DNA of 64,000 nucleotides from Orbicella franksi (lineage: Eukaryota), in assembly GCA_964199315.1 (NCBI GenBank), contig OZ116699.1:27280001-27344000 (forward strand), written 5' to 3'. The translations under genes were made by a program, and so were the position numbers. The notes under the pieces were generated by a model, which saw only the letters and a list, made by a program, of their open reading frames with translations, was not told the origin of the DNA and did no database searches. Position 1 is the stretch's first letter. Every line of letters begins with the position of its first letter. Shown here piece after piece: positions 6,836 to 16,214 of the stretch.

Positions 6836-8150
6836 ATGAAGACGTCTACGCTGCTACTCGTTTTTGCGTCAGTCATTCTGATATTGTTGTCGTTCCCTGA
6901 AGAAAGTCACGGTGTCATTTTCGTTCTTACTCACGGCAAAGTAAGAGACCTCCAACGGAAGGGACACGACCGAAAGCTGAAAAGGCGCGGAGAAAAAAAG
7001 CGAAGGAACAGGAATCGCAAGAGGAAACAACAAAAACAGTTAGAGAGAAAGAAGCGTAAGGAACTCAAACGGTGGTTAGCACGGTTTTCAAAGAAAGTAA
7101 GTAGCGAGTCTGGTGTGTAGACATAAGACTTACAGCATAATAAAGAGAATAATTAATTCAGAACTAGAAGGCTAATACAGCTAAGTGACTGTTCCGTTTA
7201 TGAGCGTCGATAATGAACTGTTTATCACGTCTAGGATGAAATCGGTGTTACACTCAAATTTACTTTTAGTGTTTTTTGCACTGATTGGAGAGATCAGCTT
7301 GAAAGTGACACATCTTTTTCGCTGTGAAAGACTTAGCTCTAACCCAATGTGCATCTCATTGCTTACGGGATTATGGAAATTTTATCGATACTTTCGGCCC
7401 ATGCGGAATAATAACTACTTCGAACGCCTCGCAGCTCAAGACAAGTTGTTAATCGTCTTATCAAGCTGGACGTTCGCAACTGTTAGAACACGGAAACAAA
7501 CAAACATAACTCAAACAACGTCGGCTTTAGCTTTTTATGACAAAGCGAAGTAAATTCATATAACACGTTATCTTCTGTAATAACTCAAGCGGCAGGTAAA
7601 CATTTATGGAATGAATAGACAAGAGAGAACAGTAATTTATAAGTCACCCAGTTGTTCGAGAACTTAAGAATGAAAGCAGTCGGTTCCCATAAAAAGTTAT
7701 ATTTTAAGTGAGTTTCAAGCGATTCACAAGCAATCACTCAATGATCTAAAAGATAAAGCAGCATTACAGCATTGTTCACAGTTCGCTGCTCGTGGCTCGC
7801 TGAAAAATTCAATAATATCTAAACAAAAAGTTTAAAAATAAATCTGTCAATACGTTGCACAGGCACGTGCAGGTGGACACCTCGTTAACTTAAACACACA
7901 GACAAGTTCAATCGTGGGGTAACTGTTGTCATGAATAATCCTTTCTTTTAAGGAGAAACGTCATGGGGCCAACCTCTGTTTCTTCCTTTTCAAGATGTAT
8001 CTTATTTTGTTTTTATTATTGTACCTTGAATAAAACATTATGTTATGTTATGCTATGTTATGTTATGTTAAATGTGTCAGTTCTGCTATTTTTCAGGACA
8101 AAAACACGGATCATGGAGACCGTGGTGTCAAAACGAAACGCATATGGTAA
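6836..8150 (+). CDS. Small secreted, highly basic protein 1 (104 aa, 2 exons; candidate prepropeptide)
   Basis: Exon 6836-7096 (ATG in GCCATG; signal MKTSTLLLVFASVILILLSFPEESHG; donor AAA|GTAAGT, phase 0). Exon 8097-8150 (acceptor TTTTCAG; DKNTDHGDRGVKTKRIW-stop). AATAAA at 8491. Confidence 0.75.
8039..8070. repeat. (TGTTA)n microsatellite
   Basis: About six pentamer units just upstream of the exon 2 acceptor. Confidence 0.9.
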
Positions 8151-10978
8151 TCCTTGGACAAAGCTGAACGACAAGCCATGCAGTTAGCACTGATACCCTG
8201 AAAGCCGAGCCATATTGCCTTGGATATATCTTATCGGAACTGACGGTATGGTACTGCGCTGAGGAAATCACCCTGACATCCTACAAATCAAGACACAAGA
8301 TCCGCAAGATTGTTACGTAGAAAGTTTGTTAGGTAGAGGATTGTATCTGTGCCATGACGCAAGAGCAATCTCGTAAAGAGAACCAGACTTTGACAGTTGG
8401 AGAGACTTGAATATAGATAAAATCATAATATTAGCTCTCCTAGACGCGATGTGAAAAGCCGTTACTAACTCACGAGCTCGCGGTCGATGAAATAAATAAC
8501 GTTGTGCCTAATATCTTGGTGCTAAAAAAAAAAAAAAAAAAAAAAATAATAATAATTAGCGCAAATCTCTATCGATTACAGAGTCAGTTAATTTATCTTG
8601 TTCATCTATAAATACGTAAAACGTTTAATCATTGAATACTTCTCGAAGCCGTTCAACAATATTTTTTTGTCACAGATATAAGTACGCCTTTTTACAAACT
8701 GCGTACGCAGATTGGTTATTTTTGACGCTTGGGTTATTCAGTGGCGAAACTGAACCCATACATAAATAAAGGTATTGGCAATTGACTTGCAGGCAAGTGA
8801 GTCTCTCATTGATTTTCAGTTAAGATCTTTAGTGCACTTTCAATGACTCTTAAAATCAATATATACGAAGGACAAGTAGCCATTAACTAAGACATTTAAT
8901 TGACACGTCCTCTCCGTCGGCCCGTCTATGTTATTTGTTAACTCTGAAAAGAAGTGAAGAGCTCACGGTATGCACATTAATCAAACTGGTGCGTCAGTAC
9001 ATACCATGGTCGATCAAATACTTTTCAAGTTTACTTTTAAAGTTTTGACTTACCAGGAGAGATAGTTTGGCTTTTGTTAACCCGTTTTATACTGAACCAA
9101 GGATCCCCTAGCGTGAATCACAGAAAGTACCGGCAATGCAGAACGGTCGAGAAGTTTGAGATTAAGCTCGAAATAGTTAAGTACCTAACGACAATCAAGA
9201 TGCTAATTTGGGTCTGAGCAAACTGTTTAGGAATACGAGGAACAATATTACTTCCACCAAGGTTAAGAGGAATTTTCTACATCAGACCATTTTCTCTGTT
9301 GCTTCAATGTCCGTTTCCTGATTGAGTTAGAATTTTCGCGGAGGTCATGCACCGAAGTTCCATATACGTCGTGGCTTTAATTGCGGTCGATGAAAGTGAT
9401 GCAGAACTGTGCTCTTTCCAGCACAATCATTTATTCGCAATGATTTCCGAGGGCTCTGGTTATTTAACCAGAACCCCACACTTGAACTACAAACCGCATA
9501 AAGAATGTTCTTTTAACTACAAGATTTTGACTTTGCTGAGTGTCGGTTGTTACAAGTTCGCTTTACGTCCGCCCTGCGAAATGCAAAGGTAAAAACATCA
9601 TAAATGATTGCTCTTTATTCGTCAAAGGTACAAAAGTCTTTCAATACCGGAAGCCTGTAGGTAAAGAATATCGTATGGTGCGATGAGAACATCCAATATG
9701 TGGAAGAGAGCATCTGTTGGATTTCCAATTTTAACTATTACGTTTAGCGAAACCAATCGTTCTCTTACAATCGACGGCGGAAATGCGACATCAACAAAAT
9801 AATGCCCTTCAAATAAGTCAACTTCAAACGACACATTCTTTTTATAAAACGTACGAGCAAAATACTTTAAATTCTTTCTCATGCAGTTGATTAAAAATTC
9901 AATAACTTTGTTTTTCCAAACAGAAGAGACTCTTCCAGCAAACGCTCACGCAAAGCCTCAAAACGTTATTTTTGCATATAGAAGCGACCAGTAATCTCCA
10001 TAGTAATTCATGTTACTTTTTGAGCTTTCGTTCTGTTCAGCTTTTTCAGATGCTGGACAAATTGCAAAAGTCACAAGAAACTTAGAAAACCTGACGTCAA
10101 TCGGTTCCAGATGACCTAGTAATTCATTTTTTTTTTTGCGCTGTATTAAAGCATTTGCTGATTTTATTGGCCTTTTCGCATCACGTGACTATAACACTGC
10201 ATAAGTTACATCACTCCAAAAAGTGGGTTGTATCTTAACCTAGCTTAAAATTATGAATGAAAAAGATACGAGGTTAATAAAACTGCTATAAATGTAACAC
10301 TGCCTTCTGGTATTCATATTTATATTTGTTGTTTACAGATTCGGCACAAGTAATTTGCTAGTACGTGTCTTCTCTTAAAAATGTACTGATGAAAAGTGAT
10401 AAATGAACCTACAAATGACATTTTCTGCATTTCTTAAATAGTTGGTCCTTCATATAACTCATAAATGAAATGAGTTTCTACTTTAAAAGCATTTTTTAAA
10501 TGCATGTTATGAACCTCTAAGTGCTCATCGGTCAGCTTTACGATGAAGCACCATTTATGTCGAGAAGCTTTTTCTTTTTTTCATGACTGAACGCTCGTGT
10601 AAGTTCGTTATGGACCAACAACTTTTCCTTGACTACGACAAGCTTTGATGTTTGTGACTTCCTATTTGTTCAAAGGTTACGTTTTCAGCAAAGTTTTGTG
10701 TTGATGTCACCTTTTGTTTGAACGTTTGATAACAAAAAGTTGTTTTGAATCTTCATAGCGAGAAGCATAAAGGTGTTTCCAGGCGCCCTAGGGCGGTTTG
10801 ATACTCAAATGAGTTCCATGAATACTGAAGAGGCTTTCCACGTTGCTTTGTCATGTTGATTGTCTATTTTGAGGATCAGGAGGCGTGTTTATGTAATTGA
10901 TGTCATACTTGTGTGAATTGCTGGGTTTATAAGGACTCTGTTTGCAGCATACAAGTCATATTTGACACTGAAGTGAAA

Positions 10979-15414: not shown

Positions 15415-15449
<35 letters not shown>

Positions 15450-16214
15450 ACGAATCGTGTTTTTCAGTTGAGATGAATCCAAATGAATTGAAGCAATCTA
15501 GCACCTGGTGATTTAAGGAGCAAATTTTGAAGACTGACAAGTTGGTAATAGTTGTAGCTTTTCATAAAATTACACTGCTTCTTTGTCTAAAACTCCATTT
15601 GTCCAAAAATGTGCGGAATACTCTTCTGGCGGGCGTGAGAACTTCATTTAAAATGCCCGACATTGTTCAGTTTGGATTATACGTCGGTTGCCAAGGTCAG
15701 TGGAATCTGCGTTGTGTTTGTAAGATTCTGTAGATCCAGCGACTAATCTACTTTAAAACTGTTTACCTTCAACACCCTCTTATGTGAAAAACAAATAAAG
15801 CAAACAAGAATGGAGATTAACGCTAATATCAATTTCTCGACGAAAGATTTTTCTTGCGATTCCACACTCAATGTCTATTAGTAATACTTCCTCGACGTAA
15901 GGCACAGACCTGAGACACAGAAAACTTGACGAAATTATCGAAAGCATAAGTCGAGATACTTCAATTACGTAAACTACTTTCTTACTTAACATCATCCTTT
16001 TTACCCAGTGTTGCAGCCACCTCTCTTTCTTCTGTTTCTTCTCCCTAAAGTTGGACGTGTCATGTTGAGGTGTTGTGGAGACGACTGGTTCTTCGATACG
16101 TTGTCCGGTCAAGACTATGATGATCTTTCTCCCGTCTCCTTGCTCTATCTGCTGGCCAATGGCGATAATCCCCAGTAATGCTTGCAAAAGGACAATCGAT
16201 TTAATGGACTTCAT
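15116..16214 (-). CDS. Small secreted protein 3 (about 82-103 aa, 2 exons; candidate prepropeptide)
   Basis: TATAAA on minus at 16280-16275. ATG 16214; signal MKSIKSIVLLQALLGIIAIGQQIEQGDG. Donor uncertain (exon end 16005, 15986 or 15978). Acceptor before 15190; phase-0 exon 15190-15116 RTRKADNSANRTGGHFETNRRDRT-stop. AATAAA on minus at 15035-15030. Confidence 0.65.
15412..15450. repeat. (AAAT)n microsatellite
   Basis: Run of tandem AAAT units in the intron of secreted protein 3. Confidence 0.9.

Follow-up and report, generated by a model that had tools for sequence, protein, structure and literature searches.

A 64,000-nucleotide stretch of the genome of the coral Orbicella franksi (assembly GCA_964199315.1, contig OZ116699.1, positions 27,280,001 to 27,344,000; hereafter the window) carries three neighbouring genes, G1 (6836-8150, + strand), G2 (10979-11897, +) and G3 (16214-15171, -), that belong to an undescribed, hexacoral-wide family with a distinctive and strictly kept architecture. 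All three are expressed, spliced protein-coding genes under purifying selection. Their elements follow a common order: a signal peptide, a hydrophobic strand, the motif x-x-[KR], a spacer, a helix around a Trp residue, an intron and a short polar last exon. The reading that we favour, from comparison of sequences and with a probability of about 0.4, is that the products are a new hexacoral family of largely intact, secreted, ligand-like or effector-like mini-proteins, which may present two specific epitopes at a set distance.

The genes are not chance open reading frames (ORFs), because orthologues of each were found at 50-98% identity and the pairwise ratios of nonsynonymous to synonymous substitution (dN/dS) are below 1 (0.14-0.32 for G1, 0.19-0.65 for G2 and 0.20-0.31 for G3, with synonymous sites near saturation). 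RNA evidence was drawn from three raw poly-A runs and one contig set, compared with positions 10700-16400; the runs are bulk, and all reads and joints come from X24 (raw reads) and X1 (contigs). The G2 joint (11242/11862, with GT..AG ends) is present in one raw read and one contig, and the main G3 joint (15986/15190, with CT..AC ends) in four raw reads and in a contig at depth 243. For the putative G1 intron, splicing is established only through orthologues: the corresponding intron is missing from two independent Pocillopora RNA contigs (L018 and L019), and the acceptor and the exon-2 peptide, with its K-x-I-W end, are conserved in four corals. The original prediction had described three two-exon genes with a shared prepropeptide layout, and all of the motifs that it quoted were found in place. 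Its splicing scheme agrees with the RNA joints of G2 and G3 and with the spliced Pocillopora transcripts of G1, except that the RNA joint puts the G3 donor 8 nucleotides (nt) upstream of the implied site ('...LSKK') and the intron in phase 1. An intron at a similar position, which had also been proposed, is found in G1 and G2 (phase 0 after codon 87 or 88); the main G3 donor lies in codon 77.

G3 has a second donor after 16005 (TGG/GTAAAA), 19 nt from the main one and joined to the same acceptor (15190). It is in phase 0 after codon 70, directly past the Trp motif, and gives a 94-residue isoform that continues in another frame through 15116 (...RWLQHW-RTRKADNS...DRT, then stop). This donor is used in the transcripts of a close relative (P0027; L020, L021), and the annotations of Oculina and Desmophyllum give the resulting form; Oculina has kept both donors. 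The main isoform, of 82 residues, ends in ...RMMLKNKESG and has a C-terminal Gly in three species.

The precursors comprise 82-104 residues, and the products are cysteine-free and basic (isoelectric point, pI, 10-12). In the signal peptides, judged by eye from the sequence, a K/R n-region precedes 14-16 hydrophobic residues, and small residues occupy positions -3 and -1; these features are conserved in the orthologues. At, or nearly at, the start of the mature product stands a β-branched hydrophobic hexapeptide that is characteristic of each family ([VI][VI]F[VI]L[ST] in G1, FAL[ST]L[ST] in G2 and III[VI][LM]T in G3) and is followed by x-x-[KR]. The charged spacer is fixed in length, at about 40 residues in G1 and G2 and about 24 in G3, and leads to a short amphipathic helix around an invariant Trp ([KR][RE]W[LIV]xx[FYW]); exon 2 supplies the short polar tail.

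Exon 1 of G1 encodes a signal peptide (residues 1-26, with SHG at 24-26), the strand VIFVLT, HGK, a polybasic spacer and the Trp helix KELKRWLARFSKK, which contains KRWLARF; the last exon encodes DKNTDHGDRGVKTKRIW and the full product has 104 residues. Exon 1 of G2 encodes a signal peptide of the same length (GEG at residues 24-26, then FALTLSSRR), the strand FALTLS, SRR, a K/R/E mixed-charge spacer with hydrophobic residues every 3-4 positions, and the helix DLKKMLKKYKSTHRTK; with TKSGRLSGVDS from the last exon the product has 99 residues. In G3 the signal peptide precedes QQIEQGDGRK, the strand IIIVLT, GQR, a Ser/Thr/Pro linker and the Trp helix KKERWLQHWVKRMML, which contains ERWLQHW. The GDG of G3 (residues 26-28) directly precedes RK-IIIVLT-GQR, and signal cleavage after AIG (residue 20) appears at least as likely as cleavage after GDG. 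The RWL that G1 and G3 had been said to share is present in both. Orthologues of G2 have a Trp (KW[IV]K[KR]Y) at the position of the Met in the window protein (KKMLKKY), and the RWL link therefore reaches all three families.

Two conserved islands stand out in each family, namely the end of the signal peptide with the hexapeptide and x-x-[KR], and the Trp helix; between them the protein varies more, especially in G1 and G3. A third island in G1 is the C-terminal K-x-I-W. The strand that follows the signal peptide is matched in its degree of conservation by the Trp helix, by the spacer length and, in G1, by K-x-I-W. In the G1 family the length of the spacer and its K+R fraction (0.41-0.60) are kept from corals to anemones while individual positions drift. 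The mean net charge of the mature products is about +24 in the G1 family, +14 in G2 and +5 in G3 (about +26, +14 and +5 for the window proteins, with pI values of 11.9, 10.9 and 10.0). High charge is therefore a trait of G1 and G2 rather than a constant of the family; the constant features of all three are the strand and the Trp helix. There is no Cys after the signal peptide in G1, G2 or G3, the sole Cys of G2 being in the signal c-region. AlphaFold2 predicts a long helix from the G1-family alignment (predicted local distance difference test, pLDDT, 88-94 over residues 51-80) and a helix at the Trp motif from the G3-family alignment (pLDDT 81-87); the N-terminal strand is modelled with low confidence, and the models consist of helices only, without tertiary packing. 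The mature part of G2 modelled as a homodimer gave a score of 0.25 (mark 0.32), which is evidence in neither direction.

The gene order G1(+) G2(+) G3(-) is identical in Oculina patagonica (ACROYT_G006977 to G006979; L003) and Pocillopora meandrina (L017), with G1, G2 and G3 present once each in three coral genera; in a further coral (L001), G1 and G2 were seen within the 20 kb examined. Single-protein searches of the whole 497-Mb assembly returned no further copies of G1, G2 or G3, and the weak matches in the coral's own genome (L005, L006, L008 and L010) were rejected as paralogues, being low-complexity or unrelated ORFs. A profile built from 14 G1-type proteins and run against 1.84 billion representative proteins gave only 12 matches at E ≤ 0.001 (nine at E ≤ 1e-10), all of which look anthozoan; the named ones are from Pocillopora and Nematostella vectensis (EDO42622.1/A7S0Y5, 2.8e-15). 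A named orthologue of G3 occurs in Desmophyllum pertusum. At the Nematostella locus, the 10 kb on either side yielded the G1-type gene alone. The G1 type therefore dates at least from the divergence of stony corals and sea anemones, and the shared gene order makes the three-gene cluster at least as old as the split of the Pocilloporidae from the lineage of this coral. These results bear out the proposal of an old, lineage-restricted family of small secreted basic proteins.

Pfam returned sub-threshold noise only, both for the three exon-1 proteins and for the full set of 21 G1-family members. Among all PDB chains, the G1 profile matched nothing at E ≤ 1 and mature G3 nothing at E ≤ 10; a match of mature G1 to ribosomal eS6 (E 0.07-0.19) was read as compositional. 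The ESM Atlas gave no usable matches, and the structural neighbours of the model of the Nematostella member are long helices only. Assignment of the three genes to unrelated known families, which would have contradicted the original prediction, thus found no match in any of the three resources. The database names of family members are all 'hypothetical' or 'predicted', apart from a plainly spurious YlxW label on one member in IMG, and a literature search with the accession numbers and peptide strings of the family returned nothing relevant.

Paralogy of G1 and G2 has good support from profile comparison. When the loci are scanned with profiles, each gene is the best non-self match of the other, and with enlarged profiles the matches extend over the full length (G1 profile to Pocillopora G2, 7.6e-8; G2 profile to Pocillopora G1, 2.4e-8; these values come from a small database, and the signal peptide contributes to them). 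An hhalign comparison of the mature parts gave P = 0.018, with one of 150 column shuffles reaching the score. The two genes have in common the phase-0 intron and a strand-to-helix spacer of 40.6 ± 2.1 (G1) and 39.8 ± 0.4 (G2) residues, and a further protein, P0048, bridges them, with a G2-like strand, a G1-like RWLRKF and an E-value of 7.8e-4 for the G1 profile against the 1.84 billion proteins. G3 aligns with G1 collinearly along both the strand and the Trp helix (P = 0.011; 1/150 shuffles), and its comparison with G2 is not significant (29/150). The paralogous family proposed in the original prediction therefore stands well for G1 and G2 and is weakly supported for G3, which we nevertheless regard as likely to be a paralogue on account of its layout, its adjacency and its alternative phase-0 donor straight past the Trp motif. 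That G3, and perhaps also G2, is unrelated to G1, the likeness arising from signal-peptide and basic-helix composition, would fit the G2-G3 result, the G1-G3 P value of only about 0.01 and the different phase of the main G3 intron, but is very improbable given the mutual best matches of G1 and G2, the bridging P0048, the collinear order of elements in all three genes, the second G3 donor and an adjacency that is conserved in three coral genera.

If the products are read as mini-proteins, they would leave the cell largely intact after removal of the signal peptide, and we take 'largely intact' to be an assumption. Outside the cell they would act as ligands or effectors. The free N-terminal strand and the Trp helix would form two specific binding epitopes whose distance is set by the spacer, and the partner would be a receptor or a surface. 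In G1, whose net charge is about +26, the spacer may in addition act as a tether to polyanionic surfaces, for example mucus, glycosaminoglycans or the envelopes of microbes. Several observations weigh against this reading. The polybasic spacer of G1 contains 10-21 dibasic pairs and 0-3 R-x-[KR]-R sites per protein; convertases could therefore cut it, which is the main weakness of the assumption that the proteins remain intact. The invariant Gly-[KR] of the G1 family looks just like an amidation site. AlphaFold2 shows no tertiary contact between the two conserved islands, and the homology of G3 to G1 and G2 rests on a P value of about 0.01 together with layout and adjacency.

It is possible, though rather unlikely, that the family constitutes a hitherto unrecognized hexacoral class of peptide hormones or cytokine-like ligands, dating from the coral-anemone ancestor and engaging a dedicated receptor at two sites. 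A rigid charged helix would then hold the strand and the basic Trp helix about 40 residues apart, and the three coral paralogues would be ligands that differ in spacer and in affinity for the matrix. A hydrophobic N-terminal segment combined with a helix is the two-epitope design of many receptor ligands. In hormones of the motilin/ghrelin type the active peptide lies directly past the signal peptide or pro-peptide and has a hydrophobic N-terminus and a basic helix, and the parathyroid-hormone family carries an R-x-x-W-L helix. The likeness to these vertebrate hormones would be one of layout only, in the N-terminal hydrophobic segment and the basic Trp-Leu helix; the mature products described here are two to three times longer, and no sequence relation was found among all PDB chains at E up to 10.

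The proteins could alternatively be cationic host-defence peptides in which, after loss of the signal peptide, the part that is polybasic or forms an amphipathic helix binds and disrupts microbial envelopes, as in the arminins of Hydra and further cnidarian antimicrobial peptides of restricted taxonomic range. They resemble arminin and periculin (PMC10945409) in having a signal peptide, a small size, a cationic mature part, tandem paralogues, 'hypothetical' annotations and no homologues outside a cnidarian subgroup. The absence of cysteine, the pI of 10-12, the net charge of +26 in G1 and +14 in G2, the predicted helix, the hydrophobic pattern of the Trp helix (i, i+3, i+4, i+7, as deduced from the sequence) and the K+R fraction that G1 keeps from corals to anemones despite drifting positions would all suit such a role, as would the tandem arrangement and the taxon restriction, which are also seen in Hydra antimicrobial peptide genes. 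However, the families in Hydra are restricted to the genus, have expanded and evolve fast (PMC10945409), whereas the coral family is old, being present in corals and anemones, and has a stable copy number in 1:1:1 synteny without expansion and under purifying selection. The exact motifs are conserved between corals and anemones, and G3, at only about +5, shows that charge is not the common feature of the family. Nor is there sequence similarity to arminin or periculin, a cysteine pattern or a bipartite anionic/cationic layout; an anionic pro-region is lacking, with only 2-3 acidic residues before the strand. A role in host defence is therefore doubtful in our view.

The original prediction had the proteins release hydrophobic peptides of 6-7 residues. 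As prohormones they would be cut at the basic site behind these residues, the G1 peptide would be amidated through its Gly (giving VIFVLTH-amide), and the rest would be a spacer or a second product. This agrees with several features: the strand begins at the predicted signal cleavage site, Gly-[KR] stands right after it in 22 of the 22 scored G1-family sequences (anemones included), a basic residue is kept at the equivalent place in G2 and G3, and the Gly-ended main isoform of G3 in three species would fit an amidating secretory pathway. Cnidarian preprohormones of amidated neuropeptides (Antho-RFamide, GLWamide; surveyed in PMC7523074 and PMC11087051) are similar in being small, taxon-restricted secretory precursors with a signal peptide and, in the case of the G1 family only, in the conserved Gly-Lys/Arg directly behind a short peptide that starts where the signal is cleaved. 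The strand and x-x-[KR] are thus kept across species as had been proposed, but the Gly-basic site is invariant in G1 only. The Gly of this site is missing from all 13 G2 sequences (which have RR, KR, RS or RK, one coral having lost the dibasic site in TPRS), and in G3 the site is mostly GQR or GNR, Gly standing immediately before Arg in only 2/17 sequences. Each precursor contains a single copy of the strand motif rather than tandem copies, and a purely aliphatic 7-mer would be expected to be very poorly soluble. The 'spacer' is basic and conserved, not acidic and variable, and its far end, the Trp helix and K-x-I-W, is as conserved as the peptide. Equal constraint on the distant Trp helix, on the length of the spacer and on the C-terminus would not be expected of a precursor whose only product is its first seven residues.

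The strings of the Nematostella member were absent from the supplementary files of the 2019 peptidomics study (5 files; PMC6756747) and the 2024 study of G-protein-coupled receptor deorphanization (55 files; PMC11087051) and from a full-text search, which is weak negative evidence. This absence and the lack of Pfam and PDB matches agree with the earlier statement that this is not a named cnidarian neuropeptide family. The release of amidated hydrophobic peptides, as originally formulated, is not sustained; the products of G1-G3 are probably not simple precursors of tiny amidated peptides, and the prohormone scheme as a whole is improbable.

A purely structural function seems a little less probable again: as packaging polycations, inside vesicles or in the extracellular matrix, the proteins would neutralize and condense a polyanion (sulfated mucus glycans, cnidocyst poly-gamma-glutamate or acidic matrix proteins) without signalling, which would fit the conservation of charge density and spacer length in G1 despite a poorly conserved spacer sequence and the moderate to high RNA depth in adult coral libraries (243 for the G3 contig), but leaves unexplained why the N-terminal strand and the Trp helix are so strictly conserved and why G3 is weakly charged, and the named matches are hexacoral only while cnidocysts occur in all cnidarians. 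Cysteine-rich cnidarian toxins and small cysteine-rich proteins differ in having a conserved cysteine framework, which is lacking here (zero Cys past the signal peptide). In kind, the family is closest to a secretory prepropeptide or mini-protein gene cluster.

The positions of the gene parts are collected in Table 1.

Table 1. Parts of G1, G2 and G3, in window coordinates.
Feature	Positions	Strand	Remarks
Conserved non-coding leader 5' of G1	6293-6835	+	75% identity with Pocillopora (blastn, 6293-7224)
G1 exon 1, coding part	6836-7096	+	87 codons; ATG at 6836
G1 intron (putative)	7097-8096	+	phase 0 after codon 87; GTAAGT...cag, donor at 7097
G1 exon 2, coding part	8097-8150	+	17 codons + stop; conserved K-x-I-W end
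G2 5' untranslated region	10960-10978	+	adapter-flanked RNA contig end at 10960, ~30 nt 3' of TTTATAAGG
G2 exon 1, coding part	10979-11242	+	88 codons; ATG at 10979
G2 intron	11243-11861	+	phase 0 after codon 88; RNA joint 11242/11862
G2 exon 2, coding part	11862-11897	+	11 codons + stop
G3 exon 1, coding part	15986-16214	-	76 codons + 1 nt; ATG at 16214
G3 intron, main form	15191-15985	-	phase 1; RNA joint 15986/15190, CT..AC ends
G3 exon 2, coding part, main isoform	15171-15190	-	ends ...KNKESG, then stop
G3 3' untranslated region	14491-15170	-	adapter-flanked X1 contig end at 14491; X24 depth

The leader upstream of G1 is itself conserved. In a four-species alignment that includes Oculina, Pocillopora and a further coral, 56-68% of it is invariant, and in Pocillopora it lies within the spliced G1 mRNA contig. 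Over its length of about 540 bp the conservation relative to Pocillopora exceeds what neutral sites would allow, synonymous sites being saturated. A 40-codon upstream ORF in the leader (6600-6722) keeps its start, stop and length in three corals; its differences are spread over the codon positions as 9/9/7, without codon periodicity, and a coding peptide was therefore rejected. An Rfam search of the leader gave no match. The stretch may act as a regulatory leader or as a cis-regulatory module. TATA-like motifs 5' of G1 and G3 were dropped as promoters because the transcripts of relatives begin further upstream. About 380 nt 3' of the G1 stop lies a genomic A-run of about 21 bases (8526-8546), which could prime internally in poly-A libraries.

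Oculina and Pocillopora both retain the exon-2 motif of G2, G-R-[LF]-(S)-G-x-D-S. In Pocillopora the last exon encodes SKQGRFSGADSW (L017:15929-15967), in Oculina TTTGRFGADS (L003:14775-14807). Both contain (Q)GRF, the core of Antho-RFamide, without the Gly-basic site of an RFamide precursor, and the GRF is probably a coincidence. The G3 intron contains an (AAATA)n microsatellite at about 15406-15458.

The window is eukaryotic in character, with about 38% G+C. Upstream of the cluster a 174-residue ORF (1653-2177, +) has 76% nucleotide identity in Oculina and Pocillopora, where it is annotated as a protein; it is without a Pfam match and is a syntenic neighbour. Between G2 and G3, positions 12419-12800 hold a tRNA-derived repeat resembling a short interspersed nuclear element, with a tRNA-Thr-like part at 12581-12655 (-). 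RNA contigs over it add up to a very high depth of about 6000-7000, and many of their loose ends pass into unrelated sequence; it is a dispersed, transcribed repeat family. Also between these genes, an RNA contig of 1034 nt at depth 21 (13388-14399) spans a 200-residue ORF (13838-14440, -) and may represent a gene, read-through or DNA carry-over. ARAGORN called a tRNA-Gln (CTG) at 38569-38644 (+).

Cnidarian annotations tend to overlook small secreted proteins or to label them 'hypothetical', although the signalling, defence and venom molecules of greatest importance to coral physiology are among them. The family described here has neither a Pfam model nor a literature, while its exact motifs and fixed spacing are kept from sea anemones to reef corals. 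Nematostella, in which knock-outs are done, has a member, and the function is therefore directly testable in a model animal. If the proteins are ligands, they would form a new branch of non-bilaterian peptide signalling; if they serve in defence, the family would be an unusually old and slowly evolving one.

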